Positions 4,901 through 27,840 of a stretch of 64,000 bases of DNA are shown in pieces. The DNA is from Amphiscolops sp. MND2022 (taxonomy: Eukaryota), in assembly GCA_964187785.1 (NCBI GenBank), contig OZ076419.1, positions 7,936,001 through 8,000,000 of the forward strand, in the 5' to 3' direction. Numbering within the stretch: the first letter of the stretch is position 1; every line of letters begins with the position of its first letter. Both the position numbers and the translations under genes were made by a program. The notes below the pieces were generated by a model that saw only the letters and a list, made by a program, of their open reading frames with translations, ran no database searches and was not told the DNA's origin.

Positions 4901-7900
4901 GCTTCTGAGATCTTTAGCAGGATGGCTAAAACATATAAGTCTTCAATATTTAGGTAATATTAGCCATGGATGGTCTTATTAAGGAAAAGCATGTCTTGGA
5001 AAACAAGATAGAACGAAATTGGAAGTGTGTGTGCTGCAGCATGTTGTTCAAGATAGTTTGATATTCCATCAACCCATTTCAGGCAATTCATGTTGAATAA
5101 TTCCAATTTACGTCTGTAAATCAATGAAGGGTACCATATAGCACGACACTCAGTACACAAAGACGATAGTAAAGTAACTTTGTACGGATACAAAGATATC
5201 GAGGCAGGTTCCGTTTCAAAAACTGGAAAGACTTCCTAGCTGCAATTAATTTAGTTTGAATATGCTTGTCCCTGGATAAATTGTCAGAAACCATGATAGC
5301 CAAGTATTCGATAGTATTTACAACTGGTAGCTCGTTGCCATCCAGGAAGAACGGGCTTATTGGTTCTCTATTTTTCAATGGAGATAACGTTGCATTTGGT
5401 AATATTGAATCTCATTAGGTTTTCGTCCGACCAGTAAAGAAAACCGGTGATATCGTGCTGCATATTAGAAGTTGTCAAGACTGAGTGAAGCTTACTGTCA
5501 TCGGCAAATAAGTAACTCGAGGATGTTTGCACTGTTTGGGTAGATCGTTAATAAAGATAAGAAATAGAAGAGGGCCGAGCACGTTCCCCTGAGGAACACC
5601 ACTTGTAAATTTTGCAGAATCAGAAAGAAACCCATTTACGTATACCTTTTGAGATCTTTGCTTAAGATAGTATTTGAAAAACACCTAGAAATCGGAGCCA
5701 AATTTGAAAGAAGCCTATTTCTGGAAGAGTTTGTGATGAGAGACCAGGTCAAAGGCTTTAGAAAAATCAAAATAGACTGAGAAGCTGGGTCCATTCTCAT
5801 CAAGTTGAAGAAGCAATTGGTCAAGAGAAGGGAGTAATTGCGTACTTGTTGAACGATTTTTCAAAGAATCATGTTGTATGTCACAAATAAACGGTCGTAT
5901 TTAAGGATAAATGAAACGAAATGTAATTTTCGCAAGAATTAGGGATAACTGAGGCAAATTGCTAATTGGACGATAATTTTCCACATTTTTGGGGTTACCA
6001 GATTTGTGAATTCGCTTTATGGTAGAAAACTTCCAGGAATCTGGCCTCTGTTCTGATCTGATAACGGTATTAAACAACTGGGTGACAAGAGGTGCTAGTA
6101 GCCATGGACAGGAGTTAAAAACGAATGTGGGGTTGGGATCAGAGCTCGAACAATTAGAGGATGCACTGGAAAGTAAATCTTCAACCATCGAAACTTCGAT
6201 TGTCATATCCTGCACAAACATTTGTGGATTTTCAGCTATTGGTAAGAATATTGCGTTGCTTGTTTGGTATACAGAGCTTAAGTAGGAATAGAAGAGGTTA
6301 GCGATATGAAAATTGGTGCTAGCCTCGTTATGTTTCCAATGCATCTGGTTGGGTAAATGATTAGGAGAGAATGAGCGCAGGTACATGAAGCAAGAGCGAG
6401 TCGAACTGGGTGAGGGACTGTCAATCAAGATAGTTTTGTCCAGTTCAATAGAATTTTGTATGTCGTCCTTCAACTTCTTTTGAAATGTTGGTTCATAATT
6501 GTTGCTGTGTGGAGCTTATTAATCATATGTATAAAGTGAGAGGAGTAGAAATATGAGACTCAAATCTCCTGTTAGTTTTGCGATGACAGGATGCATTGAT
6601 TGCATTCATGAGCACTTGATACCAGACGGCAACATAATCATCAAAATAGAATTGAAGAAAACTGGAGTTAGGGAAGCTCAGAAGGTCATAGTAGCGAGAA
6701 GACAGATTTTGATTGAAGCAGTGAGTGGCGAAAGAAGAAACTGAATACTTTGAGATGTTGTTTGAGAACTTTGGTTGGGCAAGGGCTAAGGTAAGGAAAA
6801 CCATGCAAAAACAGCAAAGTTATCTGAGTACAGACAATCATCCACACAAACCGTAAAAAGTTCTGGAGTTGAGGTCAATATGAAATCGAGTATGCTTCCG
6901 GACTTGTAAGTTGGTTCGAAAACAAGTGGCAGGAGATTTAAATTTTCGCTTTTTTCCAATATTGCCTAAAAACAATCAGAGTGTGCCCAAGAGACGTCCA
7001 CCAAGTTAATGTCACCAAGGGTTGTAAAATAATTCGAAGATACAAGATCGTCGTTGAAGTATGAGGAAATGCAGTCTACTAGTAAGTCAGCTTGAATACG
7101 GTATGGAGCATTTGTGGCCGGGTTATAAATCAGTAGAAACATGTGAGAGCAGTATTCGTCAAATAGCTAGATGGCAGTTGAGTAATTGTTTAGCTTTGAA
7201 ACTTCTGAATGGTTGAATTAGTTGAATTGAAGTTCTTTTTTGGTAGCTATCAAAACCCCACCATGTTCCCCAGTTATTCGATCTTGTCTGGAGATTGTTG
7301 TATAATTGCTTTTTAGTGGGAAACTTTCAGAATCCTTGATAAATGGTTAGAGCCAAGTTTTAGTTAGAAAGATGATATTTGGGGAATGAAAACTGAAAGA
7401 ATTCAGAAGTTTGAGTCGTAGCGAAACATCAATAAGGCTTTGGACATTGATTAGGCAAGATTTGATTTGCAGTCAATTTTGCAAGTTAACCTCAAAACCA
7501 TTTCTCATAAGTTTCAGACCTTTAATTCGCAGTTCTTTTTTGGGGACGTTCTTATTGTTTTTCATTTGATATCTTTTTCAAACAGTTTACGTCTCGTTGC
7601 TTGGTCTTCCTTTTTTAGCGATTTAGAAATGTAGAGTGGCACAGGGTATGATTTCAGTTTGTAAGCTTTCGATAAACTTTTGCGAGCATCCCATTCAGAG
7701 GTAAAACGTACAAACAGGGGCCTGGGTCTTTCTGAATCACGCTGAGGACGTCCAAGTCGACGTGTTGTTTCAATGGAGAACATGGGGTCACCAATATGTT
7801 GGAAGACTTATTCCAACTTGAAGTCATCAGCTTCAAAAGAGGGATGAAAGTCACCCTTATCCTCAACAAGGCGACTTATTAGAATCTCACGACAAGTGGG

Positions 7901-12891: not shown

Positions 12892-12943
<52 letters not shown>
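12892..12943. repeat. (CTA)n microsatellite, at least 17 units, truncated by the gap
   Basis: Directly visible. It could be the 3' tail of the upstream LINE or the flank/target of the YR element. Confidence 0.95.
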
Positions 12944-15164
12944 ATCTAATTAATGGCGCTTTGCTGTTTGTGCTAGCTGGCGCTCTGCTGCTCCAGAACC
13001 AATACCTAAAGTAAAAATTGGGAAAAAAAGCCAAAACGATTGATTATACACTTCTACTGCTCTTTAAAATGTTTGGACTGCATTTGGTAAGGCATGGGCA
13101 GCGCAAAAAACGTTAAAAGTCAAAGTTCAAACGAAATCCGCATTTTCAAACGAAAAATGGCGCTCTGCAGAGAGCCCTGTCACAACTGGCTTTCTGCAAC
13201 CTGCAACTGGCGTTTCAACGAGTGCAAATGGCGTTTTACAAAGTGCAACTGGCGTATTCGAGAAATACGAAGAACATCAGTTGAATCATAAATAATGCAG
13301 TGAAATCAGCAAAAAATTTTGCGGAGGGTGACACAGATTCAAAGCAACTCAAACAAATCCTATGAAAGACGTAAGAACTGAAAGTTTGAGATATACTGAA
13401 TAATAAATTCAGATTTTGAAACTTCGTTTGTTTTGTTTCCAGCAAGCCTTGTTTTAGCAACCAAAATTTTTCAAGGAAGCTCACAGCACATTCAAAACTA
13501 GTTACAGTCTGGTTAAGGCACAAGATTGAGGTTCACAAGAAAAAGGTTCATTCGCTGATGGAGATGTTTCAGGAGAGTAGGTTGACCATTAGTAATTTCT
13601 TTCCAAGCAGAGCAATTGATGCAACGCAAGTTTTTACTGACACAATTGCTCTGCTTTGGAGAAAATGAGCACAAGAAGAAAAAGGCAGGGTCCGATTACA
13701 TTTGTAGTTTAGAAAAGTGAATGAAGTTTGTCCAAGACATACAAGCTATAACGGTTTCCGGGTCTAGCTTGAGTCATAACCAATTATCAAATAAAATCAA
13801 AAACTGTTAGAAAACATGGTCATCATGGAAAAAAGAGCGCCAATTAGATGCAAATATTTTTGATCTCACTTCATTTGAAGATTCAGTCAGTAGAACTACC
13901 TGACTTGGTCTCCTGTGAAAAAGAAAGAAAGAGCGCCAATTGGATTGCGAAAAACGACTTGTACCCAGAAGAATTGGTGTTTTGGTAAAAACAAAATTTA
14001 TTTACGCTGCTCTAAAAATAAACAGTTGATTCACTCAGTGGCCTTCACTCTAGAGTTTTCAAAGAAACAGTGTTTGCAAATTTATACAAAAGACGATAGA
14101 AGGGCAGGCTCTTTTTCCTTCCCCCCACACGCGGTGAACACCAAATTTTTACCTATTGAAATATGTTCTTTTGTAACTTTTAATTGATTTTAAACAATTA
14201 AAGCACTGTAATTTGCTGAGGCTGCAAATATTTGCGTAAATTGTAACCATTTTGGCATTATTTTCCAATATTTCTTTACTTTTTCTCTTGTGTGGGGGAA
14301 AAGGAAAAAGTTCCGAAGGGCATTTTGTGAAGCATAGCATTGAAGTGAACTCCCTTCATCTGGACATGTTGAAACATGCTGTCAACAAGACGGGAACCGT
14401 CCAAGTCCGCACCCCGCTCAAGGCGCAAACGTTTAACCGGGGCATGGCTCTAGTGTCTCGTGTTGAAATTCAAGAAAAACGCTATACTAGAATTTTTCTG
14501 TTTACGCCCAAATTCAAGCTCAAACAAATTGAGCACCTTGGACCTTTCACTCCCACCTTTACCCTCAAAGAAATGCCCAAATGGTCGCTGAAATTTTAAC
14601 TAATCCCGTGGAAAAAACATTGGTTTCGACAGCATGTTAGAGAATACCATGTTAGAGCCAATGAGATGCATTTATCATCAATTTCATTCAAAAGACTGGA
14701 ATTTTAATTTGACTAACACGTTGATTGACGACCAACACGTTGATTGAGGACAGATGATTCTACTAGATGATCGCTGTGGTGTATCGACTGTTTGGGCAGT
14801 CACAAAACTGATATTTCAAAACCGATTGGTGTTGAAGTCACCAGCAATGATAAATGCCCTCATTGGTAGTCATCCCTATCATACCAGGAATTGCGAAGCT
14901 CGAAATTAGTAGTACTAGTAGCACCTTGTTAGTGGAATAGACTTCACTGGATTTTTTTGCAAATTTCATCATCATCCACGGGGCCCATCATGAACAAAGG
15001 GCCCCGTCATCGCCAGAGGGCCCATCTTTAATCATTTCAAAACTTTGTCGTGTGGAGAAGCACGTGTTGCTGGAGGCGTTGTTGGAGGAATGTTGATGGA
15101 GACGCACGTGGGCCCTCATTGAGGGCCCTATAAACCTCGAAATTGGTTGACTAGTAGCACCTTA

Positions 15165-15940
15165 TTAGTGGAATAGACGTCACTGGAATTGACTTTTGTA
15201 AATTGCATCATCATCACTTCGTTGTGTGGAGGAGCACGTGTTGTTGGTGGAGTTGTTGGAGGAATTGAAGAAGAAATGTTGTTGAAGGAGCACGTGGGCC
15301 CTATAAACCTTGTAGTTTCTAGACCAGGAGCCCCTCATTAGTGGAATAGACGTCACTGGAATTGACTTTTGTAAATTGCATCATCATCACTTCGTTGTGT
15401 GGAGGAGCACGTGTTGTTGGTGGAGTTGTTGGAGGAATTGAAGAAGAAATGTTGTTGAAGGAGCACGTGGGCCCTATAAACCTTGTAGTTTCTAGACCAG
15501 GAGCCCCTCATTAGTGGAATAGACGTCACTGGAATTGACTTTTGTAAATTGCATCATCATCACTTCGTTGTGTGGAGGAGCACGTGTTGTTGGTGGAGTT
15601 GTTGGAGGAATTGAAGAAGAAATGTTGTTGAAGGAGCACGTGGGCCCTATAAACCTTGTAGTTTCTAGACCAGGAGCCCCTCATTAGTGGAATAGACGTC
15701 ACTGGAATTGACTTTTGTAAATTGCATCATCATCACTTCGTTGTGTGGAGGAGCACGTGTTGTTGGTGGAGTTGTTGGAGGAATTGAAGAAGAAATGTTG
15801 TTGAAGGAGCACGTGGGCCCTATAAACCTTGTAGTTTCTAGACCAGGAGCCCCTCATTAGTGGAATAGACGTCACTGGAATTGACTTTTGTAAATTGCAT
15901 CATCATCACTTCGTTGTGTGGAGGAGCACGTGTTGTTGGT
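15165..15940. repeat. 173-bp tandem array, ~4.5 near-identical units, with degenerate flanking copies (~14900-15160, ~15940-16200)
   Basis: TTAGTGGAATAGACGTC starts at 15165, 15338, 15511, 15684 and 15857. The period is not a multiple of 3, so the array is likely non-coding. Confidence 0.95.
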
Positions 15941-17013
15941 GTTGTTGGAGGAGTTGAAGAAATGTTGTTGGAGGAGCACGTGTTGTTTGAGAACTTGAAA
16001 ATATGTTGTTGGAGCAGCACGAGGGGGCCCTCTTTGAGGGCACTGTAAATCATCGTCTGGAAGTTGAAGATCGTTTGGAGCTGCGATACATGTGGTTAGG
16101 TCCACAATCCATTATTGTGGAGCAGCACGAGGGGGCCCTCTTTTAGGGCCCTATAAATAGTCGTCTGGAAGTTGAAGATCGTTTGGAGCTGCGAAAATAA
16201 ATGGAGCCTTCTCTCCTCATAATCATCATCAGTAAAATCTGAAACACATTCTTTTCAAGTAAAATTCAAATCATTTTATAAGAGCTCCACTCAAAATCTA
16301 ATGGCCCTTTTTTGGTCTACTCAGAATCTAACCGATGCGTTTTGCAATTGGTACTCTGAATAAAAAACAAAGCGAGATGAGTTTACGTTTTCGAGTAAAA
16401 AAAAACAAAAAAGCGTGAGTTGATCCAAAAATGTTGAAAAGCAATGTCTGCAAAAACATCAATCAATTTTGACCTTGCGAAAATGTAACATCCCAATGAT
16501 CGTTATCAATATGAATCTACAAAATGAAGTTAGATTTTGCAATATGAACTACCTCTAGTACTCGCTCGTGAAAAAAGGAAATGTGTTCCGAGAATTTTTT
16601 TGACAGTGGAACCAACCCCAAGATCGTTTTCCATCTTTTTATACTCTGGGGAGTTTTCAGGTGTTTGTATTTTTTGTTTTTTTTTGCATCTTTTTTTCAT
16701 TCCAGCCTGAAGTTTCAGGCGTACAACAACAATTCAACAACAGTTCAACAACAATTCAGCAACAATTCATCAGAAACCCAACAAAAATTCATGAACAATT
16801 CATTAGAAACAATGCAGTAATAAAAGTTCAAACAGCAAGGTAACAATGGAAATGGTAACAAGGTTAACATGATAACAAGTGATTAAAAAAGCTCAAACAG
16901 CAAGGTAACACAGTAAATAGTTACATTAACACGAAAAGTTCCTTGCAGCAAAGAAGTATGGGCTATTAGTAAAAATATTGAAAAGTGCAGGAAATTGGAT
17001 CAAACATATCAAT

Positions 17014-20000
17014 CTACTTGTTTGCTGAAGGAAGGTGTTGATTGCACGCCCATTTAAGTTTTGCATAAACTATGCTTTTAGAGGCTTCAGAAAGTTTGAT
17101 TCCAGCTTCTTCTATTTTGCGCAAAGCATCTTCTTTGTGTATTCTGTAATGAAGGCCACTGAATAATTCCATTGCTTTCGCTTCTTCTTTCGAAGGCATT
17201 CGCTTCCGCCAAATGGTCAAAGTTTTTATGAAAGCTTCTCGATTGACTTGACCTTTAGAAGTTGGGTTCTTTTTTCTGGCCTTCTTAGCTGGAACTGGCA
17301 TTTCTTCATCTGAGTCCTCTTCACTAAAGGAAAGACTGTTCTCATCCGAAGAAACCACTTCCTTAGGAGCAGACACTTTCGGCTTCTTAGTCTTCTCTTT
17401 GCTCTTCTTTTCAACAGCTGGAATGGGAGTAGAACTTATTTCTGGTGTAACAATGTAACTTCGTCGTTTTTGGACGGGAGTGGTGACTTCAGCGTCATGA
17501 CTCGGCGTTGATGACGTTGATTGCTTTTGGACATCGGGAGCAACCCATTTCACTGTCTTCTGTCGTTTCTGAACAGAAGTGCCAGAATGAAGATTGATAT
17601 CTGAAGAATCACTGTAAGAGGAAAGTTTGGATCCTGAAGGAGTACTGCTGTTCAATTTTTGAACGGCACGTTTTATCGTGTCATGATAGAAGTCGCTAAC
17701 TTCAGAGCTGTGCTTCACATAATGCGCTTCGGCTGTCTGTTTCCTATGAGCACTCTGTGTCTCGTGGAATGCTAGCTCTTCTTGACTCAATTTATGTTTA
17801 TTATAAAACACATAAGTCTCCCAGGTTTTACGGATCGAATTCCCATTAAAATTCTTCTCAAGAATTTCGTTGTCAAAGTGCTGAGCCATCACTTTCCTGA
17901 TGATGTTGGCCAGGGAATGATCTTTCTTATCCTTCTGGGTGCCAAAAACTCTGTCACCGACGTAACCGTGCTTCTTTTTGAACTCTTCCTTCAGTCTTTT
18001 TAACCAAGGAAATTGGTCTTTGTGAATTTTCAGTTTAATATCGTAGTAGTGACCGGTTTTGTGGTTGTCACAATCAAATTGACCCTCTTTCTTAATCTTT
18101 TTCACAAGAGACCATGTCAAGTCGTTAATTGGACCAGGACGACCGTTTAGATTCGAGCATAAAATGATGAAATTGAAACACTTGAGTTCATCCAAGCTAA
18201 GAAACTTCTTTGAAACATCTTCATTGCACAATTCTGTTATTTTGGAGTACACTGTAGCTAGATGAGTCATGTCAGGAACTTTTTCGAATAACTTCTGGCG
18301 CGTTCGTCGTTTTTCTTTCAACGAACCCTTCTGGTAACGTGCTTTAACGTCTCTAGATATGACGAGCCAGTCGACTTCGGCAAGTCCAGGAAACTGGGAT
18401 GGTTTATACGCCTTGGCATACTTGATCAACTTTTCCAAACTACAAATGTAATTGACCACAGTAATTCGAGTAAGATGTTTTTCTTCGAAATATTCTCTCA
18501 CAAAGACAGCGAAAGCTAATGTGTCTGTGAAACCAGCAGTTGCCTGAATTGCTTTACACAAAAAAGCTTTTTGAGTTGAGGGTATGTCCCATTGTCCTGA
18601 AACATCTCCATCAGAGAACAATCCTTTTTGATGAGTAATCCACGCCTCAACAAACTGACAATTTGGTAAGTGCAGGCCACTTTGAAAATTCTTAATTGCG
18701 AGAACAATGCTATGAGGAAACAAACTCATGTCCTCGCGGTCTCCAATTCTTTCCACATTATGTTCTTTTGGGTGCCTGTGTTTGTCACCCATCCTTACAT
18801 TGCACACATTGCACTGAAAGCACCTATCAGTTTTGATAGTGCTGTAGTAAGATAAAAGAAATTTACGGATAGGGTCAGTCTGCGGGAGTTTATGTAGATT
18901 AGTGAGATGATCCCTCATTTTATGTACTTCCTTTGCACACAGAAGACACTTTTCAACTGAAGGGCGTTTGCTCCGGTAGCTTTTTAAGGGACGCAGTTTC
19001 GGTTCTTCAGTCTCACTCTCTGTGTCACTATCACTATCACTTGAGTCGGTGTCACTCGTATCATCCTTTTCATCATTTTGCGGATGCGGATGGGAAGTTC
19101 CTTGCATGTTCCATTCAATGCTTGCATTTGGATCCAAACCCATGTGTGTCTCGGTGGCTAATTCTTGAGAAACAACTTCTTCTTGAGCTCCAACTTCCAA
19201 ACTCTGAATACTCCCAACTGGGTTTACAAGTTCATTCTCGACAGTAGCAGTCTCCAAACGTTCGCCAACTTCCAAACAACGACTTTCAACTTCCAAATCA
19301 CACGTAGCAGTTTCGATAAGTCCTCCAACAGTAGTAGTTTCCAAACGATCTCCAACATTCAAACAAGGATTTACGAGTAAATTCGCAACAGTAGAAGTCT
19401 CCAAACGTTCGCCAACTTCCAAACAACGACTTTCAACTTCCAAATCACACGTAGCAGTTTCGATAAGTCCTCCAACAGTAGTAGTTTCCAAACGATCTCC
19501 AACTTTCAAACAAGGATTTACGAGTAAATTCGCAACAGTAGCAGTCTCCAAACGTTCGCCAACTTCCAAACAACGACTTTCAACTTCCAAATCACACGTA
19601 GCAGTTTCGATAAGTCCTCCAACAGTAGTAGTTTCCAAACGATCTCCAACTTCCAGACAAGGTTTCACACGTTCCTTCTCGACAGTAGCAGTCTTCAAAC
19701 GTTCTCCAACTTCCAGACAAGGTTTCACACGTTCCTTCTCGACAGTAGTCTTCAAACGTTCTCCAACTTCCAGACAAGGTTTCACACGTTCCTTCTCGAC
19801 AGTAGTAGTCTTCAAACGTTCTCCAACTTCCAGACAAGGTTTCACACGTTCCTTCTCGACAGTAGTAGTCTTCAAACGTTCTCCAACTTCCAGACAAGGT
19901 TTCACACGTTCCTTCTCGACAGTAGTCTTCAAACGTTCTCCAACTTCCAGACAAGGTTTCACACGTTCCTTCTCGACAGTAGCAGTCTTCAAACGTTCTC

Positions 20001-21111
20001 CAACTTCCAGACAAGGTTTCACACGTTCCTTCTCGACAGTAGTCTTCAAACGTTCTCCAACTTCCAGACAAGGTTTCACACGTTCCTTCTCGACAGCAGT
20101 AGTCTTCAAACGTTCTCCAACTTCCAGACAAGGTTTCACACGTTCCTTCTCGACAGTAGTCTTCAAACGTTCTCCAACTTCCAGACAAGGTTTCACACGT
20201 TCCTTCTCGACAGTAGTAGTCTTCAAACGTTCTCCAACTTCCAAACAACAATCTTCAACTTCCAACCTTCCAGTATCAGTTTGCAAACAATCGCTAACAT
20301 TAGAAAGTTCTTCAAGTTCACCTTGCGTATTATTTCCTTCCAGAAACGAATTCAACTGAAGGGCAAGTTGTGTGTTATCGCTGTTTACGAATGACTGGAA
20401 CGCACCTTCCAATTCGCTCATCTCCGGCCCAGTGGAATCTCGACTCACCTCAAGAGCAGCCAACTTCGAAGTTGAATCACCTTGTAATCTTCCGCCCACA
20501 ACTTTAACTCCCTCCCCTAACTCTCTGTTGGGCGCCACAACTTCCAAACAACGACTTCCCTCTGTTTCATCATTAGTGACAGACTTCCCAACTTCTTTTT
20601 GGGGGGCTTCACTGACTTTCCTCTTGGTGGTCTTTCTCTGCTTAGGAACTTGCACAGCAAGTCCCGCTTTCTTCGTCCAGAATGACGTTTGCCTCCAAGG
20701 TGCAACTTTTGTTCCATAGCTGTATCTTAATTCCGTGCCCTCCGAGATGGAGGTGGTCGTAAAGAAGGCAATAGTCCATTTACCATCATTGCTATAAATC
20801 TTGCGAGCTTCACAATTCCTGGTATGGTATGGATCAACGTCATTGATAAACCTGGCTAAACATGTTTGATCTTCTGAGGAATCAACAACTAAATTTTCTG
20901 GCGGTCCTGTCTCAAATGCATAGGGGTTGTCAGAAGCAACAATCTTTACTGTCCCTCTGTAATTTAAAAGAAACTCCCCCTTGTGGAATTCTCGCTTCAC
21001 AAAGAGTCCTCTACCGGCATGAGGAACATCGCGAACTTCGAATAAATCTGGATCTTTATCGACGAAACTAAAAGGGTCCACTTCAAAACCTTTGACTCTT
21101 CGCGGTCGCAT
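17014..21111 (-). CDS. 1365-aa SET domain + peptide repeat + two C2H2-like zinc fingers + tyrosine recombinase fusion protein
   Basis: SET motifs: GRGLF, LNYRG, ARFIND, ELRYSYG (~21045-20716). Fingers: CLLC..H..H (~18948-18892) and CNVC..H..H (~18820-18760). YR residues (ORF-track numbering): R998 (NGRP), K1025 (HKT), N1098xxR1101, H1129, Y1138 (H-x8-Y). First ATG at 21111, preceded by a TTTTTTCAG acceptor. No stops or frameshifts. Confidence 0.85.
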   Translation of the reverse strand: MRPRRVKGFEVDPFSFVDKDPDLFEVRDVPHAGRGLFVKREFHKGEFLLNYRGTVKIVASDNPYAFETGPPENLVVDSSEDQTCLARFINDVDPYHTRNCEARKIYSNDGKWTIAFFTTTSISEGTELRYSYGTKVAPWRQTSFWTKKAGLAVQVPKQRKTTKRKVSEAPQKEVGKSVTNDETEGSRCLEVVAPNRELGEGVKVVGGRLQGDSTSKLAALEVSRDSTGPEMSELEGAFQSFVNSDNTQLALQLNSFLEGNNTQGELEELSNVSDCLQTDTGRLEVEDCCLEVGERLKTTTVEKERVKPCLEVGERLKTTVEKERVKPCLEVGERLKTTAVEKERVKPCLEVGERLKTTVEKERVKPCLEVGERLKTATVEKERVKPCLEVGERLKTTVEKERVKPCLEVGERLKTTTVEKERVKPCLEVGERLKTTTVEKERVKPCLEVGERLKTTVEKERVKPCLEVGERLKTATVEKERVKPCLEVGDRLETTTVGGLIETATCDLEVESRCLEVGERLETATVANLLVNPCLKVGDRLETTTVGGLIETATCDLEVESRCLEVGERLETSTVANLLVNPCLNVGDRLETTTVGGLIETATCDLEVESRCLEVGERLETATVENELVNPVGSIQSLEVGAQEEVVSQELATETHMGLDPNASIEWNMQGTSHPHPQNDEKDDTSDTDSSDSDSDTESETEEPKLRPLKSYRSKRPSVEKCLLCAKEVHKMRDHLTNLHKLPQTDPIRKFLLSYYSTIKTDRCFQCNVCNVRMGDKHRHPKEHNVERIGDREDMSLFPHSIVLAIKNFQSGLHLPNCQFVEAWITHQKGLFSDGDVSGQWDIPSTQKAFLCKAIQATAGFTDTLAFAVFVREYFEEKHLTRITVVNYICSLEKLIKYAKAYKPSQFPGLAEVDWLVISRDVKARYQKGSLKEKRRTRQKLFEKVPDMTHLATVYSKITELCNEDVSKKFLSLDELKCFNFIILCSNLNGRPGPINDLTWSLVKKIKKEGQFDCDNHKTGHYYDIKLKIHKDQFPWLKRLKEEFKKKHGYVGDRVFGTQKDKKDHSLANIIRKVMAQHFDNEILEKNFNGNSIRKTWETYVFYNKHKLSQEELAFHETQSAHRKQTAEAHYVKHSSEVSDFYHDTIKRAVQKLNSSTPSGSKLSSYSDSSDINLHSGTSVQKRQKTVKWVAPDVQKQSTSSTPSHDAEVTTPVQKRRSYIVTPEISSTPIPAVEKKSKEKTKKPKVSAPKEVVSSDENSLSFSEEDSDEEMPVPAKKARKKNPTSKGQVNREAFIKTLTIWRKRMPSKEEAKAMELFSGLHYRIHKEDALRKIEEAGIKLSEASKSIVYAKLKWACNQHLPSANK
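19190..20250 (-). repeat. Coding tandem repeat: ten 57/60-bp units (CLEVGERLKT(T)TVEKERVKP) followed by three 147-bp units
   Basis: Read from the translation and the DNA. All length variants are multiples of 3. Confidence 0.95.
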
Positions 21112-22274
21112 ATTCACTCTGAAAAAATGCAAAACTTGTTCAGTGTATCCATCAAAACTTGAACACTTTCACTACGTCTCTCGATCAATATTGAACTCCA
21201 GTTAATGTTTCCAACAGTCACTGGAAGTTCACCGTGTTTTCTTTGAGTCTCTGACACTTGTCTCCGCTTCTTCTGTTCCAAAAGGAAATCTGCAAGGCTC
21301 GCATTTCCCTAGTTTTCATCACGAGTTGAGACATACGATGAGTGCGTCTCTAACGTTCGTTTTGGTGAAAAACTCAAATCCGATTACGCTCATGTTAAAA
21401 AACGTGCTTATGATAGCAGCAAAACCGTCTAATCAAATGGCATCCAAACTTCTGAGGATCGAGCTCACCTAAAATTTAAACGTAATAACTTCAGGACTGA
21501 ATTCTTTTTCCCTATAGAAAAACACATCTCATAATTGATCGAAAAGCTTCTTTGCCACACATTGCTTTTTCCCTCTCACAAAACTATGATAACTTCAAAA
21601 GATTAAGAGGTGTCATTAGTAACTTCATGGATGGCTTTGAGTTTGATAATGATATAATGTTCAGATTTTATAATGATATAATAAGAATAAATACGAATAC
21701 TATTTTTATCAATGAGTATATAAATTTTCCAGGTGAATATTTGCCATTGATAGGGAATATGAAAACATCCGTTCCATAATCCTCGAGAAAGGTTCCGAGA
21801 AAAAGGTGATTCTTTTTTCAATTTTCAATGGAGAGGGTTTTGCGTTTTTGGATATGAGAAAAATCAATGTGTGGCTTTCAACGTGGGTTTTGTGAACGTT
21901 ATTTCTTCTGATCCGAGTGGTTAAAGGACAAAATAAAACTTTTCCGTTTTACAAAGTCCACAGAAAACCGCTGAAAAACAATGGTCGACCCAATTAAACA
22001 GAATACTGATCGAAAATGATTTCGCAACTGGCGCAGATTAGAAGGTCAATTGCAACTGGCGGTATGCTATGAGAATTCGCCAGTTTACAGAAAAATCTGG
22101 AAAATCATCATTTTCGGTGAAATTCAATTCGAAATTTTGTTTAAACGTGTTTTGCAGTTAATTTAAGCTGAATGAAACCATTTAGTCATGCTAAGTTGAC
22201 ATGTTGGCGATTTGCCCCCCTTAATTTTCAAAAGTGCTGGCGATTCGCTAATCTGGCGCTATGCTAGGAGGCAA

Positions 22275-22440
22275 NNNNNNNNNNNNNNNNNNNNNNNNNN
22301 NNNNNNNNNNNNNNNNNNNNNNNNNNNNNNNNNNNNNNNNNNNNNNNNNNNNNNNNNNNNNNNNNNNNNNNNNNNNNNNNNNNNNNNNNNNNNNNNNNNN
22401 NNNNNNNNNNNNNNNNNNNNNNNNNNNNNNNNNNNNNNNN
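22275..22440. other. Assembly gap (166 N)
   Basis: Run of N. Confidence 0.99.
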
Positions 22441-22505
22441 GTCGCCTTTTCAAAATGGGATGAATTGTTGTTTTTTTGGAACTTGGGACGAATTGTCGTC
22501 CAACC

Positions 22506-22733
22506 TGTGACATACACAGACCTTCAACCGACCTTCAACCGTATCAATACGGATAGCAGACTGAGAAATACTTGGTGCTATTGACTAACAACTCTAATTG
22601 CTGTCTATTTATGTTACTTAGATATACTACCATTTAGTATGATTTGATATATTCGTTGAGATTGAGATAGAAGAAGATAGTTGATTCTTATAGACAACAG
22701 CGTTTTACAACCAAGTATTTGGAGAATACCACA
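22506..22733 (+). repeat. Gypsy 5' LTR
   Basis: TG...CA ends; matches 27841-28057. Confidence 0.9.
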
Positions 22734-25700
22734 TGGAGCAATCAGCAAGATTTTCCCCAAATTTTACGATGACAACGACTATGAGCAATATACAACAACC
22801 ATATCTCGAAGACACCGGACTTGACGGTAAAAAGATATACACACCAAAAAAATGGACGGGGAACGACGACGACACTATATCAAATGGATCTACGACATTG
22901 ATATAAAACCGGCATTATCCGGGGAAACAATACCAACCAGCAACAGATGGACTGAACAAGAACCAGAAATAAGACAAGATCTCATCTGGGGAGCCGGTAC
23001 GTCAGCAATCGAGAACAAAACCAAAGGAGAATTTCACACGGACCCAGACACGATAAACACGGAAAGACTACTACAACCATTCAAGACCTATTACATGCCT
23101 AAGCGAAATACGTACCACAGCCGTTGAGATTTGTTTCGGGCAAAATAAGAAGGAATCCGAAACCTCGGAAGAACACTGGAGAAAACGTATCCCTGGAGAA
23201 AAACTGCGAATTCAAACAAGAAGATCTACTTAGCTCAAAATTCATCTCAAGTATCACCGATAAAAAAAACTACGTGAAAAACTCATACGCAAAAAAAACA
23301 TTGAACCTCAAAACAACGATGCACTCAGTAACCCAAGAGGGCTACGAGAAGAGACATAAACAATCAAGAATACCCACAGTACTGGTAAAAGAAAACTAAA
23401 CTAAACAAGAACCAATACAAAAAAGCCACTGAACAAACAATACCTAAACCGAAAAACCACCACAGAAGAAAAACGACTGCGGATTCTGCGGACAACAAAA
23501 CTCGACACCACTACACAAATGCCCGCAAAAACAGCGGAATGTAATAAGTGCTACAAGATGGGACATTTTGCAAGAGTATGCCGCAGCAATACCGAGAACG
23601 CAAGAAAAAGAATAAACCACATCGAGGAAACATACAACGATGAAGAACAAAGCGAACCCGAAAAAATTCAACAAATAACACGAATTAACCGAATACTGCC
23701 GGATAAGAACGACCACTACGAAATCAAGATGGAAATCAACGGGAAATACCAAATTTTGACAAGTGACACCGGATCCCCGGTCACGATCATGCCGAATAAC
23801 CCGGAACTATTCAACCAAAAAGACATCCAACCACTAAAAGAAAGATACCAAGATGTGAGCAAAAACGAAATCAAAGTCCTGGGGAAACTATGGGCAGATA
23901 TCGAATACAATGGTGAAAAAAAAAACAAAAATACTATTGCTTATCACACAAAGAAACGTCATCCTACCACTACTAGGTGTAAATTGGCTAAAAGAACTGC
24001 AAATCACCATCAACAAAGTCCTATTGGATGAACCCGCCAACCAATCGAATGCTATCCACACAAAATTCCTTAATCTATTTGAAACGAATCATACAATCAA
24101 AAACACGAAGGTGAAAATCCAAATGAAACCAGGATGCTACCCGATCCAACAAAAAGCAAGAACGATACCAAACCACCTACAACAAGACGTAAAGAACGAA
24201 CTTGACCGATTAATAAAATCCGAACACCTTGAAAGACTAGAAACAATCGAAGAAGACTGTTTTGTGCCACCCGTAGTAGTTACGGTAAAAACGGTAAAAC
24301 GGTAAAAATCGCAATGGACGCCCGTAGACTAATCAGAAATTGTGTGAAAAAAAGACCACACATGCCAAACATGAAGTAACTATTAAATCAAATATCCGCG
24401 GAGCTATCGAGAAACGACCGCGATCCAATCTGGATATTCGTCATAGACCTCGACTACGCCTACGAACAAACAACGCTAGCACCGGAAACCAGAAAACACT
24501 GGAACTTTACAGTTACAGGCGACAATATGGAAGGATACTTCCGATTCCTAAAGGGATTCTACCGTCCTGCCGACATACCAAACACTTTCCGAGAAAAAAA
24601 GACAGAACCTTCGGACACCAAACGCCCGAATGGCTCCATGACATTATCGTCGTCACACGTGGAATGAAGGAAAAACACACCAAAAAACTATATTCAGCAC
24701 TCAACAAACTAGAAAACGAAGGATACGAAGGAAGCAAAAAGAAATCAAACTTCTACCAGAAAGAAACAATATGGCTCGGACATACAATCTCACAAGACGG
24801 AATCAGACCTAACAAAGAAAAAAGACGCAATAAACAAAAACTAGGACACCCAACCAACATCAAAACACTAATATTCTCTTGTGGGTAATTCAATACTTGG
24901 CAAAATTTATACCAAACCTTTCCGAAAAAAAAACGGACAACATGAGACAATTACTCAAGAAGGGGACAAAATAGGACTGGACAGAAGAACGTAACTCAAA
25001 TTTTAAGAAAATAAAACAAGCATTAACATCCCTACCGTGCCTCGCCCGCTAAAACGGAAACAATGAAAATTTCGTCACAACTGATGCCTCCAATACCGGC
25101 CGTGGAGTAGCTCCACGGCAAAAACAATGAAACGTGGAATTGAAACCCATTGCATTACCTATGCGGGAAACAGGTCCAATTGTACTCGGACCATTAAGCA
25201 CTTGAACCACTACTAAAAAAAACAATGGCAACAAAAAATACAGCGCACGGCTAGACAAGATGGCATTTTCGACATTAGCCTAAAACATACCGCTGGCACA
25301 GAAATCGACTTTACAGAGTATTTCTGTCGCAATCCCGTCTAAAAACCGGAACCGGAAGCAAATTACGAAAAAGAGTTTGTAATCAACGCCATCGCACAAC
25401 TAGCAACGGTAAACGCCCGTATAGAACGGGTTTTCAACCACTCAGAAGCCGAGAACACCATCAATGAAACGAACATGCATGATACACGCACGCTAATTGA
25501 TACGCGACGCTGCCATACAAACAAAAGCCATATCAATTCCAATTGCTACACATTAGAGCAGTTTATTGACAATACCACCGTGAACTGTTTAACAATGAAT
25601 AACAACGACAACCAGAATGAGAGATTCTTCCGAACAGACGGACAACTGGGTTACCATCGAGGCGCAGATGATCAAATCATGACAATTATCAACAGACGAG

Positions 25701-27840
25701 AAAACTCCCCTGAAACTGCAGAGCTAGTAAACAGATGGATTGAACTAGAAAAGCCAGGAGTATTGCAACCACAGTGGAACATACACCTTGGCAGAGACAT
25801 TTAACTTCCATGACGAGAGAAGAGAGATAAAAAGAATAGCTCTGCAACTGAAAAGAAAAGAAGAAGAAGCACGCATCGGTGGAGACTACTTCCGGAATTT
25901 CGGCGACGAGATACCACCAAGGCCACAAAGCCAAGATCAAACGGACGGAAGAACTGAAACAGCGAGACACCGAATCCACAACATCATCAAACCAGGACGA
26001 TGCCGTGGCAACACCTGAGCCAGCAGTATACCCCGTCCAAAGTTACCGCTATGGCCCCATCGAGGACATAACCGTCGACCACCCTGAATAAACCGAGTGG
26101 TAGAGCAAAAAGCCACCAGGAACAAGCAGCAGAAAGACAACGTCAGGGCAGCCAAGTTGGACTTCAACCTCGATTTAAAGACATTGATTAAAGAGACAGC
26201 CGCCGACCCCGACCTGATAGAATTAAACTGCTGCATTTGAGACAACAACTTCTACCAATTCCCCAACGATTACAAATCTGTGGCCAGAAAGCTTACCGAC
26301 CGCTGGGGCATAACACTGGTGGACAATAGAATAATTCTGCCGAAGACACTACGCTACGCAGCACTCAACGCCTTACACTTCGGACAACCCGGGATCAACA
26401 AAATGAGTAACGACGCAGCAATATTCTGGTGGCCGAGCATGCGGGAAGACATCGAAAAGAAAGCAAAAACTTGATCAGCCTGCGTTAATGTCGGTAATAA
26501 CCTAAAATTCCAACTACCTTTCATCAAAAAAAAACAAAAATGGAACCCCAAAACTGCGGTGAAGAAATCCAAATCGATTTCATCGGAATTCGGAACAACG
26601 AAAAGTTTGCAGTCCAATCCGTATGTTCTAATTGCAGTAGACAAAAAGAACCGGTGACCGGTAGCCAAGATTTGCAAGAATACCAACCATGAAACCGCAA
26701 AAGCATTTCTAAATGAGTTGATAAATGTTTACGGAGTGCCAAAACGAATAAAATTAGATAGAGGCTGTGATTTTATCCCAAAAGAACACAAAGAATACAG
26801 CAAATCACAAAATATTAATTGTGAATACGGTACCGTGAACATGCATACTGGTACCAGATTGGTCGGACGAACGATCCAATCAATGAAGAATCTAATACTG
26901 ACGAATTTAGAAGACGACACCAGCTTACGCGAAAGCGTAAACAGAGCACTCCATGTACTAAAATTCACGACACACTCCGAAACCAAGAAAACACCGTTTG
27001 AAATTCATTTCGGGAGAAAACTCAGAACTAAATTATCTAACCTAAAAAATTCAGTTGTAGTAGACTTAAAAGTCCTCTGAGTCTATATCACCCAAAATTC
27101 TGCGGGTGAAATAACTGACCATCTGGTCATGTCGAAGAAGAAGACGGTCAAACCGATGCTCAGACGTGGAATGACCTTCTCACAGACCAAAACGCCGACG
27201 AGTTCGGTTACTATGGAATAATTCAAATATCCTTTTAAATTCAATGAAAAGAGATACAATAAAGGATCGCTAGATAGCAAACTCAAAAAGAAAACACAAA
27301 ACGATATATCGGGTACAGAACATACCGTGACCACAAGTAAAAATAAAATAGTACATAGAAAACTAATCTCCAACCCGTTACCCTCTCAGCAAATAATTGC
27401 CGCACCAACAAAGCGAAAAAACACCCGCCAAAACAATGCCGACCATCCATCCTGCTCACAAACCCTCGACACGGAAACTTGTGGCGCCAACTCGTGTATA
27501 TACGTCAGTAAAGGGACGCCCCGACCCATACATCACGAAAAAAGCCAGGACTGGCTTAAAAGAAAAGACCAGCCAAGAAACAACAAAGGGTTATTCAGGG
27601 AAGTGGATGGATATAAACCTGAGCATTGTATCGGACGAGGAATTCGACCGCTACAACAAATCCGAAGGCAAACCGCTCCACACCAACATTGACTATGAAA
27701 TACACCTGCTCCCAAAAGAAAATAAACTAACTGAAGAAGAGGATCACCGCTCAATACGGCAAGAAGATGAAGAAATTCGTGAAATACGGTCTTACAGAAA
27801 CTCTCAGCAAAACTGTTCAAAACTAACCTGGAAAGGGGAA

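Follow-up and report, generated by a model that had tools for sequence, protein, structure and literature searches.

Cryptons are eukaryotic DNA transposons that move by means of a tyrosine recombinase (YR), and their mode of integration, proposed by Goodwin et al., has been observed live for CryptonF-1_cRei, whose ends carry CACCG and whose targets carry CAYCG (PMC9977147). No other class of eukaryotic DNA transposons is so poorly understood, and direct evidence of Crypton activity comes from Chlamydomonas only (PMC9977147). According to Kojima and Jurka, animal Cryptons have neither an additional domain nor terminal repeats, and the YRs of CryptonA match DUF3504, while SET domains and methyltransferases go unmentioned in their study (PMC3212892). 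Here, we describe an element in a 64,000-nt stretch of the genome of Amphiscolops sp. MND2022 (GCA_964187785.1, contig OZ076419.1, positions 7,936,001 to 8,000,000; hereafter the window), which we class as a Crypton-like transposon distinguished by its SET/zinc-finger fusion, its non-canonical active site and its microsatellite target. In our judgement, this 9.48-kb element is probably an autonomous DNA transposon, active now or until very recently, which uses (TAG)n for recombination, and the open reading frame (ORF) that it carries would be its transposase. A full-text search of the literature, which did not extend to Repbase or Dfam, returned no transposon combining SET with a YR and no YR element that targets a microsatellite.

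The ORF lies on the minus strand of the window, and encodes 1365 amino acids (aa) from an ATG at 21111 with zero internal stops; a preliminary description made from the same sequence had likewise given 1365 aa without stops. An alternative upstream TTG start at 21132 would lengthen the product to 1372 aa. The residues named in that description are real, but their numbers are 7 too high with respect to the ATG because they were counted from the TTG. Its proposal that SET, zinc fingers and a tyrosine recombinase are joined in a single protein is upheld by Pfam, profile searches, fold comparison and conservation. For comparison, two sister subfamilies (loci L004 and L001, one of the two subfamilies coming from another sample) were available, which share 54-55% protein identity and whose DNA is alignable in parts of the coding region only. 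The protein is organized as follows:

17014..21111, minus strand: ORF with SET domain, repeat linker, two C2H2 zinc fingers, YR and conserved C-terminal tail (stop codon at 17014-17016; identical protein on 9 contigs)
20713..21015, minus strand: SET domain, aa 33-133 (Pfam PF00856; PDB sequence matches; motifs kept in three subfamilies; low nonsynonymous divergence, dN)
19223..20248, minus strand: coding tandem repeats of the linker between SET and zinc fingers, aa ~290-630 (Tandem Repeats Finder, TRF)
18742..18954, minus strand: two C2H2/Ros-MucR-like zinc fingers, aa 720-790 (family consensus; profile matches; predicted local distance difference test score, pLDDT, of 89-96 in the AlphaFold model)
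18280..18666, minus strand: predicted helical core-binding-type domain of the recombinase, aa ~816-944 (structural alignments, model residues 97-225; Phage_int_SAM_1 in relatives)
17707..18279, minus strand: predicted YR catalytic domain, aa ~945-1135 (R991, K1018, N1091, R1094, H1122, Y1131)
17026..17241, minus strand: conserved C-terminal tail, aa ~1291-1362 (43-48% identity to P0003 and P0004)

The visible element and its terminal features are located in the window as listed below:

12892..22274, minus strand: visible part of the 9,481-bp transposon unit (100.000% identical over 9,383 bp to L008, L009 and L010; 99.7% to L002)
12892..12942, minus strand: 3'-terminal (TAG)17 microsatellite (CTA on the plus strand), proposed crossover core and target repeat
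12954..13254, minus strand: 3' subterminal cluster of six CGCCA (TGGCG on the plus strand) with three 21-nt repeats, two of the motifs being 14 and 38 nt away from the (TAG)n junction; candidate protein-binding arm
22029..22258, minus strand: 5' subterminal cluster of five CGCCA (TGGCG on the plus strand), in the same orientation as the 3' cluster
22275..22440, no strand: run of N with a true length of 166 nt, covering the 5'-terminal ~98 nt of the element and ~68 nt of flank (coordinates only)

The unit measures 9,481-9,482 bp, beginning 1,261 nt before the ATG and ending 4,122 nt past the stop codon. At least 11 copies with different flanks are present in one assembly, and at least eight of them share their boundaries to the single nucleotide in unrelated flanks; the copies are 99.98-100% identical within the unit, whereas the sequences outside it are unrelated. 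The window copy corresponds to locus L006, since window positions 22441-27000 equal L006 positions 8671-4112 at 100% identity, and the unit starts at L006 position 8740; in gene orientation its 3' end falls exactly at 12892, adjoining a run of 200 N. The exact 1365-aa protein is encoded on nine contigs of one assembly with different neighbours each time, and its 90% cluster contains 10 variants, most of them full length, on 19 contigs. Between 12892 and 22274 there is no second gene, the other ORFs of at least 80 aa being the YR relic or overlapping the gene, and the ORF and Pfam results for the unit include no reverse transcriptase (RT), RNase H or gag. The sister units L004 and L001 are likewise single-gene. 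In the visible unit sequence no long terminal repeats (LTR), inverted terminal repeats (ITR), internal complementary regions (ICR) or split direct repeats were found. The preliminary description had guessed a mobile element, and a single-copy syntenic locus is indeed refuted by the at least 11 copies in unrelated flanks; its comparison with RT-free Cryptons agrees with a multi-copy, sharp-ended, single-gene unit. The protein architecture and the mobility had been guessed correctly, while the further suggestion that the SET part could modify chromatin at the target or the protein itself is so far a conjecture. The extent of the unit (9.5 kb), its bracketing by (TAG)n and the CGCCA motifs of its arms had escaped notice.

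At the other loci, (TAG)n is located outside both ends of the unit in the same orientation and phase, extending from 33 nt to 2.7 kb on the 5' side and over ~50-380 nt on the 3' side, and the DNA beyond these arrays is unique and different at each locus. A similar bracket is found in the sister subfamilies, where (TAG)15 and (AGT)58 enclose the 11.5-kb unit of L004, and (TAG)21 and (AGT)19 enclose the 6.6-kb unit of L001. On the plus strand of the window, TGGCG is found six times in 12954-13250 and five times in 22029-22254, whereas it occurs only twice in the 8.8 kb between the two clusters, with a background of ~0.4 per kb. In each of the three subfamilies, CGCCA precedes the 3' junction by 13-14 and by 37-38 nt, while at the 5' junction L004 and L001 both carry AAAACGCCAGTT at +34 and +51, together with an inverted TGGCG at +11 in L004 and TGGCA at the same spot in L001. 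At three loci the array lies within a palindromic repeat family, for which an unoccupied palindrome with a single central GTAG is available in L001; the same arms in L002 flank (TAG)n-element-(TAG)n, and no other target DNA was gained or lost between L001 and L002. This palindromic repeat may be a preferred target or the birthplace of the microsatellite. As well, arms resembling TTGTCAYCG...GTAG...CGGTGACAA, with GTAG in the centre, were noticed at L001:4660-4700 and just past the 3' arrays in L002, L008 and L009. The 5' (TAG)n arrays in L005 and L009-L013 are 1.0-2.7 kb long, much longer than the 3' arrays, which is an unusual length for a pure trinucleotide repeat and might have arisen from repeated shifted-register recombination or slippage.

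The distant SET-bearing relative at L016 has other subterminal repeats and no TAG array, so the evidence for (TAG)n targeting comes from the three closer subfamilies only. At L016:5050-5450 and 5590-5700, ~10 tandem copies of a 36-nt unit with GCTCGYGGTGTAAGCAA are present, the inverse motif lies upstream of the gene, and a tRNA-like stretch (GGTTCGATCCC) is located near the 36-nt repeats. Judged from these repeats, L016 possibly represents a different terminal system with a possibly different target. The contigs of the SET-less distant relatives are too short to show element ends.

The C-terminal part of the protein alone gave zero YR matches against Pfam and PDB sequences, and the family profile matched PDB sequences in the zinc fingers only. 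An exhaustive HMMER search with aa 720-1160 returned 127 cluster representatives, among which full-length proteins of ~700 aa with 23-30% identity were found, and 28 of these relatives (20-55% identity) were assembled into an alignment, A1, with the consensus LNxRxGPL ... HKTGxxY ... NSIRKxWDT ... QTGHSxxTAxxxY. The AlphaFold2 model of the finger/YR part built on A1 reached a mean pLDDT of 88.5. The best 50 Foldseek matches of the YR model in the PDB were all tyrosine recombinases, and VIA-align gave Z scores of 10.0-10.7 to XerH, Tn1549 Int, XerA, Cre and lambda Int over 250-270 residues, spanning both the core-binding and the catalytic domain, with type IB topoisomerases scoring lower than YRs. 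An ESM-Atlas shape search with the finger/YR model led to PF00589 clusters; by Pfam, one family member matches Phage_integrase (PF00589) at 4.3e-5, and others match Phage_int_SAM_1. Within A1, R991 is conserved in 28/28 members, K1018 in 27/28, R1094 in 26/28, H1122 in 25/26 and Y1131 in 25/27, and the H-x8-Y spacing between H1122 and Y1131 is canonical, as had been pointed out before. Model and family conservation thus confirm a two-domain fold for the C-terminus, in agreement with the YR fold suspected in the preliminary description, together with five of six active-site residues. The N1098xxR1101 of that description corresponds to N1091-x-x-R1094, although it went unremarked that this Asn stands in place of the tetrad His.

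As for named families, DUF3504 (PF12012) gave no Pfam match at E<=10 for the ORF protein and matched 0/28 members at E<=0.01, and DUF3435 (PF11917) gave no Pfam match in the ORF protein or the 28 members. A language-model resemblance of 0.91 to DUF3435 clusters is a lead only. A profile search with the family alignment reached zero annotated relatives.

According to the mechanism that we propose, the element would excise as a circle with one (TAG)n tract between two CGCCA-bearing arms, and the CGCCA sites would position the recombinase via its core-binding domain and/or its two zinc fingers, for both of which the AAACGCCAG sites are candidate binding targets. Subsequently, the tract of the circle would synapse with genomic (TAG)n or a TAG-centred site, strands would be exchanged inside the repeat, and the integrated copy would end up flanked by (TAG)n with the target otherwise unchanged. 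Exchange in any repeat register would account for the variable lengths of the arrays.

In addition to the recombinase, the protein carries an N-terminal SET domain, to which Pfam PF00856 matches at aa 33-133 with 35.1 bits (E=2e-8), above its gathering score of 22.4, and the motifs GRGLF, ARFIND and ELRYSYG, from which the domain was originally recognized, are all present. The best PDB sequence matches of this region are the SET domains of KMT2A/MLL1 (4e-4) and KMT5A/SET8 (0.05-0.5). The GxG (GRGLF), NYRG and ELRYSYG motifs are kept in the three subfamilies. Because synonymous divergence (dS) is saturated between the subfamilies, the contrast in dN between domains and linkers was used in place of dN/dS. 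The dN values are 0.26-0.41 for SET, 0.16-0.43 for the fingers, 0.16-0.42 for the YR and 0.8-1.5 for the linkers; SET thus resembles the YR and lies far below the linkers, which argues that it is, as far as divergence tells, under purifying selection as strong as that on the recombinase.

Pfam SET is also found in the related proteins P0003, P0004, P0058 and P0024, while SET-less relatives of ~700 aa exist, and SET is therefore an accessory to the zinc-finger/YR core. A tree test of the fusion required two gains or losses of SET; the fusion may nevertheless have had one origin. A search keyed on the SET region returned the cluster of the protein itself only, and its closest Atlas neighbours are viral SET and 'set-1-like' proteins. 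Relatives with SET in AFDB were automatically named "SET domain-containing protein" and "SETD8-A", and in the Atlas 197 mostly chordate proteins labelled "SET domain-containing" form one cluster that can be aligned over the finger/YR model. The automatic annotation of family proteins as SET host genes is probably misleading. Our preferred guess is that the SET domain, as a putative methyltransferase, would methylate lysine, either in a histone or within the recombination complex, where the donor or the target lies.

The two zinc fingers follow the family consensus CxxC..H....H / CxxC..H and show weak profile matches to ZBTB7A and Ros, with ROS_MUCR matches in relatives. Upstream of them, the linker repeats have periods of 57/60 nt and 147 nt by TRF, equal to 19/20-aa and 49-aa units, and their copy number differs among near-identical protein variants of 1285-1366 aa, such as P0134 (1346 aa), P0139 (1285 aa) and P0137 (1366 aa). 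The SET-to-finger linker is a coding tandem repeat in all three subfamilies, with unrelated units (19/20-aa, 5-aa and 22-aa), the sister repeats being located as follows:

L004:7597-7989: linker repeats of one sister subfamily
L001:8933-9434: linker repeats of the other sister subfamily

At the other end of the protein, the tail of ~70 aa has 41-63% identity across subfamilies and a dN/dS of ~0.09 between L001 and L004; no match to it was found by Pfam search.

The long non-coding 3' part of the unit harbours remnants of the gene itself, in inverted orientation to the intact copy:

13433..14488, plus strand: decayed, stop-ridden recombinase relic (aa 797-1186), inverted with respect to the intact gene (tblastn; inverted repeats I1-I3, I18)
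14874..14903, plus strand: 10-aa scrap equal to SET residues 94-103, PYHTRNCEAR (tblastn; inverted repeat I5)
15042..15982, no strand: 173-bp tandem repeats, ~5.4 copies, in the non-coding 3' part (repeat families D2, D5-D7)

The gene relic is present in every copy. Relic and repeats together span window 13433-16200 on the plus strand in the order YR', SET scrap and repeats, and the order of the relic is therefore circularly permuted, as the SET scrap lies downstream of the YR relic. The relic may come from an old dimer or circle junction, or from a nested relative; no convincing fossil circle junction was found between the YR and SET relics at 14480-15060. Outside the element, the gene table of L006 lists a second SET ORF (450 aa) and a 610-aa ORF ~5.8 kb past the element on the same strand, which fall in the 200-N gap of the window. 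Just past the masked junction on the other side, window 22852-24305 (plus strand) contains ORFs with a gag-type CCHC knuckle (CYKMGHFARVC) and a retropepsin-like segment, with a strong AT skew around them at 22-28 kb; from its sequence, this neighbour looks like an LTR retrotransposon.

Several observations weigh against an active (TAG)n-recombining transposon. The 5'-terminal ~98 nt of the window copy fall within the run of N at 22275-22440, and the loci L007 and L008 are without a 5' (TAG)n array. By analogy with the events reported for CryptonF-1_cRei, these two 5' junctions may be recombinase-mediated rearrangements; in the 5' flank of L008, an inverted GCGCCAGTTG motif is present, and homology begins 29 nt later. 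With hhalign, A1 aligned to the single sequences of Cre and lambda Int, taken from annotated phage records, with E values of 0.13-0.15, which are below significance; this same non-significant register pairs R991 with Cre R173 and lambda R212, and K1018 with lambda K235. None of the 28 members has the His of HxxR, its position being occupied by Asn (15), Thr (10) or else Asp or Lys, so the canonical R-H-R-Y tetrad is incomplete. In Cre, this His is among the active-site residues that are more tolerant of substitution. In the SET domain, the NH(S) cofactor/pseudoknot motif reads ND in all three subfamilies, with the Asn kept, and the AlphaFold model of aa 1-180, based on a 6-sequence alignment, has a pLDDT of 31.6. 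No circle, excision footprint or allelic empty site was seen, the available reads being uninformative here: four read runs of unknown library type showed flat depth over coding and non-coding parts and no joints, and thus speak neither to transcription and splicing nor to circles.

The incomplete tetrad and the want of direct evidence for excision or circles would also suit a spread driven by the host, through microsatellite-mediated ectopic recombination or segmental duplication with a dead or irrelevant recombinase, and the (TAG)n arrays of up to 2.7 kb that flank the copies could promote ectopic exchange. We nevertheless consider such a spread improbable, since at least eight copies have single-nucleotide boundaries in unrelated flanks, three subfamilies with non-aligning DNA keep the bracket and the CGCCA positions, five catalytic residues are retained at 20-30% identity and dN in the YR is low, all of which points to a working enzyme with a cognate site. 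A degenerate YR retroelement of DIRS/Ngaro type, which lost its RT and is mobilized in trans, is very unlikely: a YR and a methyltransferase-like domain occur together in DIRS elements, which also have inverted or internal complementary repeats (PMC13465315), and the present unit carries an inverted relic of its own gene, yet RT, RNase H and gag are all absent from it, the methyltransferase domain of DIRS is of another type than SET, ITR/ICR and split direct repeats are missing from the visible sequence, and the sister subfamilies are single-gene. A DIRS-like retroelement was rejected, as the unit is without RT. Still more remote is a domesticated host gene, that is, a Crypton-derived regulator like the DUF3504 genes that happens to lie in repeat-rich DNA. 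Crypton YRs have been domesticated repeatedly in animals (PMC3212892), and defective DUF3504 domains lack the tetrad His as well; against this stand the at least 11 copies in unrelated flanks, many of them without a single difference over 9.4 kb, of which 5.4 kb is non-coding, and the missing Pfam match to DUF3504. The domesticated single-copy gene was rejected on copy number.

The explanation that competes most closely with a methylating transposase accepts a genuine YR transposon but takes SET as catalytically inert, a binding or scaffold module for, e.g., a histone tail or a host factor, and we give it a weight somewhat short of even. The ND in place of NH(S) in all three subfamilies, the modest scores (35 bits; PDB E>=4e-4) and the SET-less ~700-aa relatives, which make SET dispensable for recombination as such, speak for inertness, whereas the Tyr in NYRG, the Asn in the NH motif and the two tyrosines in ELRYSYG are conserved along with GxG, and the constraint on SET equals that on the YR, which shows function but not which one. 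On the side of activity, the boldest proposal is an undescribed and widespread animal transposon lineage with a non-canonical YR (Asn/Thr for His), (TAG)n-specific integration and a catalytically active SET domain, which as a histone methyltransferase would place a chromatin mark on the donor or target; we put it forward tentatively, as unlikely in its full form. If true, the mark might license recombination, protect the new copy or lead to self-silencing, and the protein would be the first transposase to bring along a histone writer, and a eukaryotic integrase that looks naturally programmable.

With its many 100%-identical 9.5-kb copies, intact gene and definable sites, the (TAG)n-bracketed transposon opens an animal system to biochemistry and transposition assays. 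If microsatellites are indeed targeted by conservative recombination, this would represent a safe-harbour strategy new to DNA transposons and a possible source of (TAG)n array growth. Moreover, a constrained SET domain fused to a transposase allows a direct test of whether mobile elements write host chromatin marks, and a eukaryote-adapted tyrosine integrase with a simple repeated target might be of interest for genome engineering.

Compared with known systems, the element has the structure by which Cryptons are defined but fails to show the R-H-R-Y tetrad. Similar to Cryptons, it has a single YR gene and neither RT nor long terminal repeats, and each of its ends carries a short sequence that equals the target. 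However, the shared sequence is a (TAG)n microsatellite instead of a 4-6-bp motif, SET, a repeat linker and two C2H2 fingers are present in the protein, the YR gives no match to DUF3504 or another Pfam YR model and has Asn/Thr for the tetrad His, and the units, at 6.6-11.5 kb, are large and contain long stretches of non-coding DNA as well as CGCCA repeats near their ends. A C-terminal domain is said to be lacking in animal Cryptons, whereas a conserved tail of ~70 aa is present here. DIRS1-like elements are also eukaryotic, YR-mobilized and equipped with a methyltransferase-type domain, but they have RT/RNase H and ITR/ICR, and RT is absent from the present element. The methyltransferase domain of DIRS elements has a DNA-methylase-like fold and is not SET. 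With lambda Int, Cre, XerH and Tn1549 Int, the recombinase shares the two-domain fold, the R-K-R-H-Y order and H-x8-Y, and the CGCCA repeats recall the repeated 'arm' motifs beside the core of lambda att. Unlike these phage and bacterial YRs, to which it is ~10-13% identical, it has no HxxR His, resides in a eukaryotic host and carries N-terminal zinc fingers in place of an arm-binding domain.

SET and a transposase are also united in one polypeptide in SETMAR of primates. SETMAR is a single-copy host gene that arose by exon capture of a DDD mariner transposase, whereas the fusion described here is the transposase of a multiplying element and its enzyme is a YR. Insertion into a repeated and largely harmless target is shared with Dada, which inserts into small-RNA genes (PMC3706591), and with the Penelope-like element Chlamys, which inserts into (C)n (PMC9977147), although these use a DDE transposase and RT/GIY-YIG, respectively. 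Finally, the SET domain resembles KMT5A/SET8 and the giant-virus vSET-like proteins, as a small SET without pre- or post-SET cysteine modules that has GxG, YxG and ELxYxYG, and it differs from these minimal SET domains in having ND for NH and in finding its best PDB sequence match in the SET domain of KMT2A.

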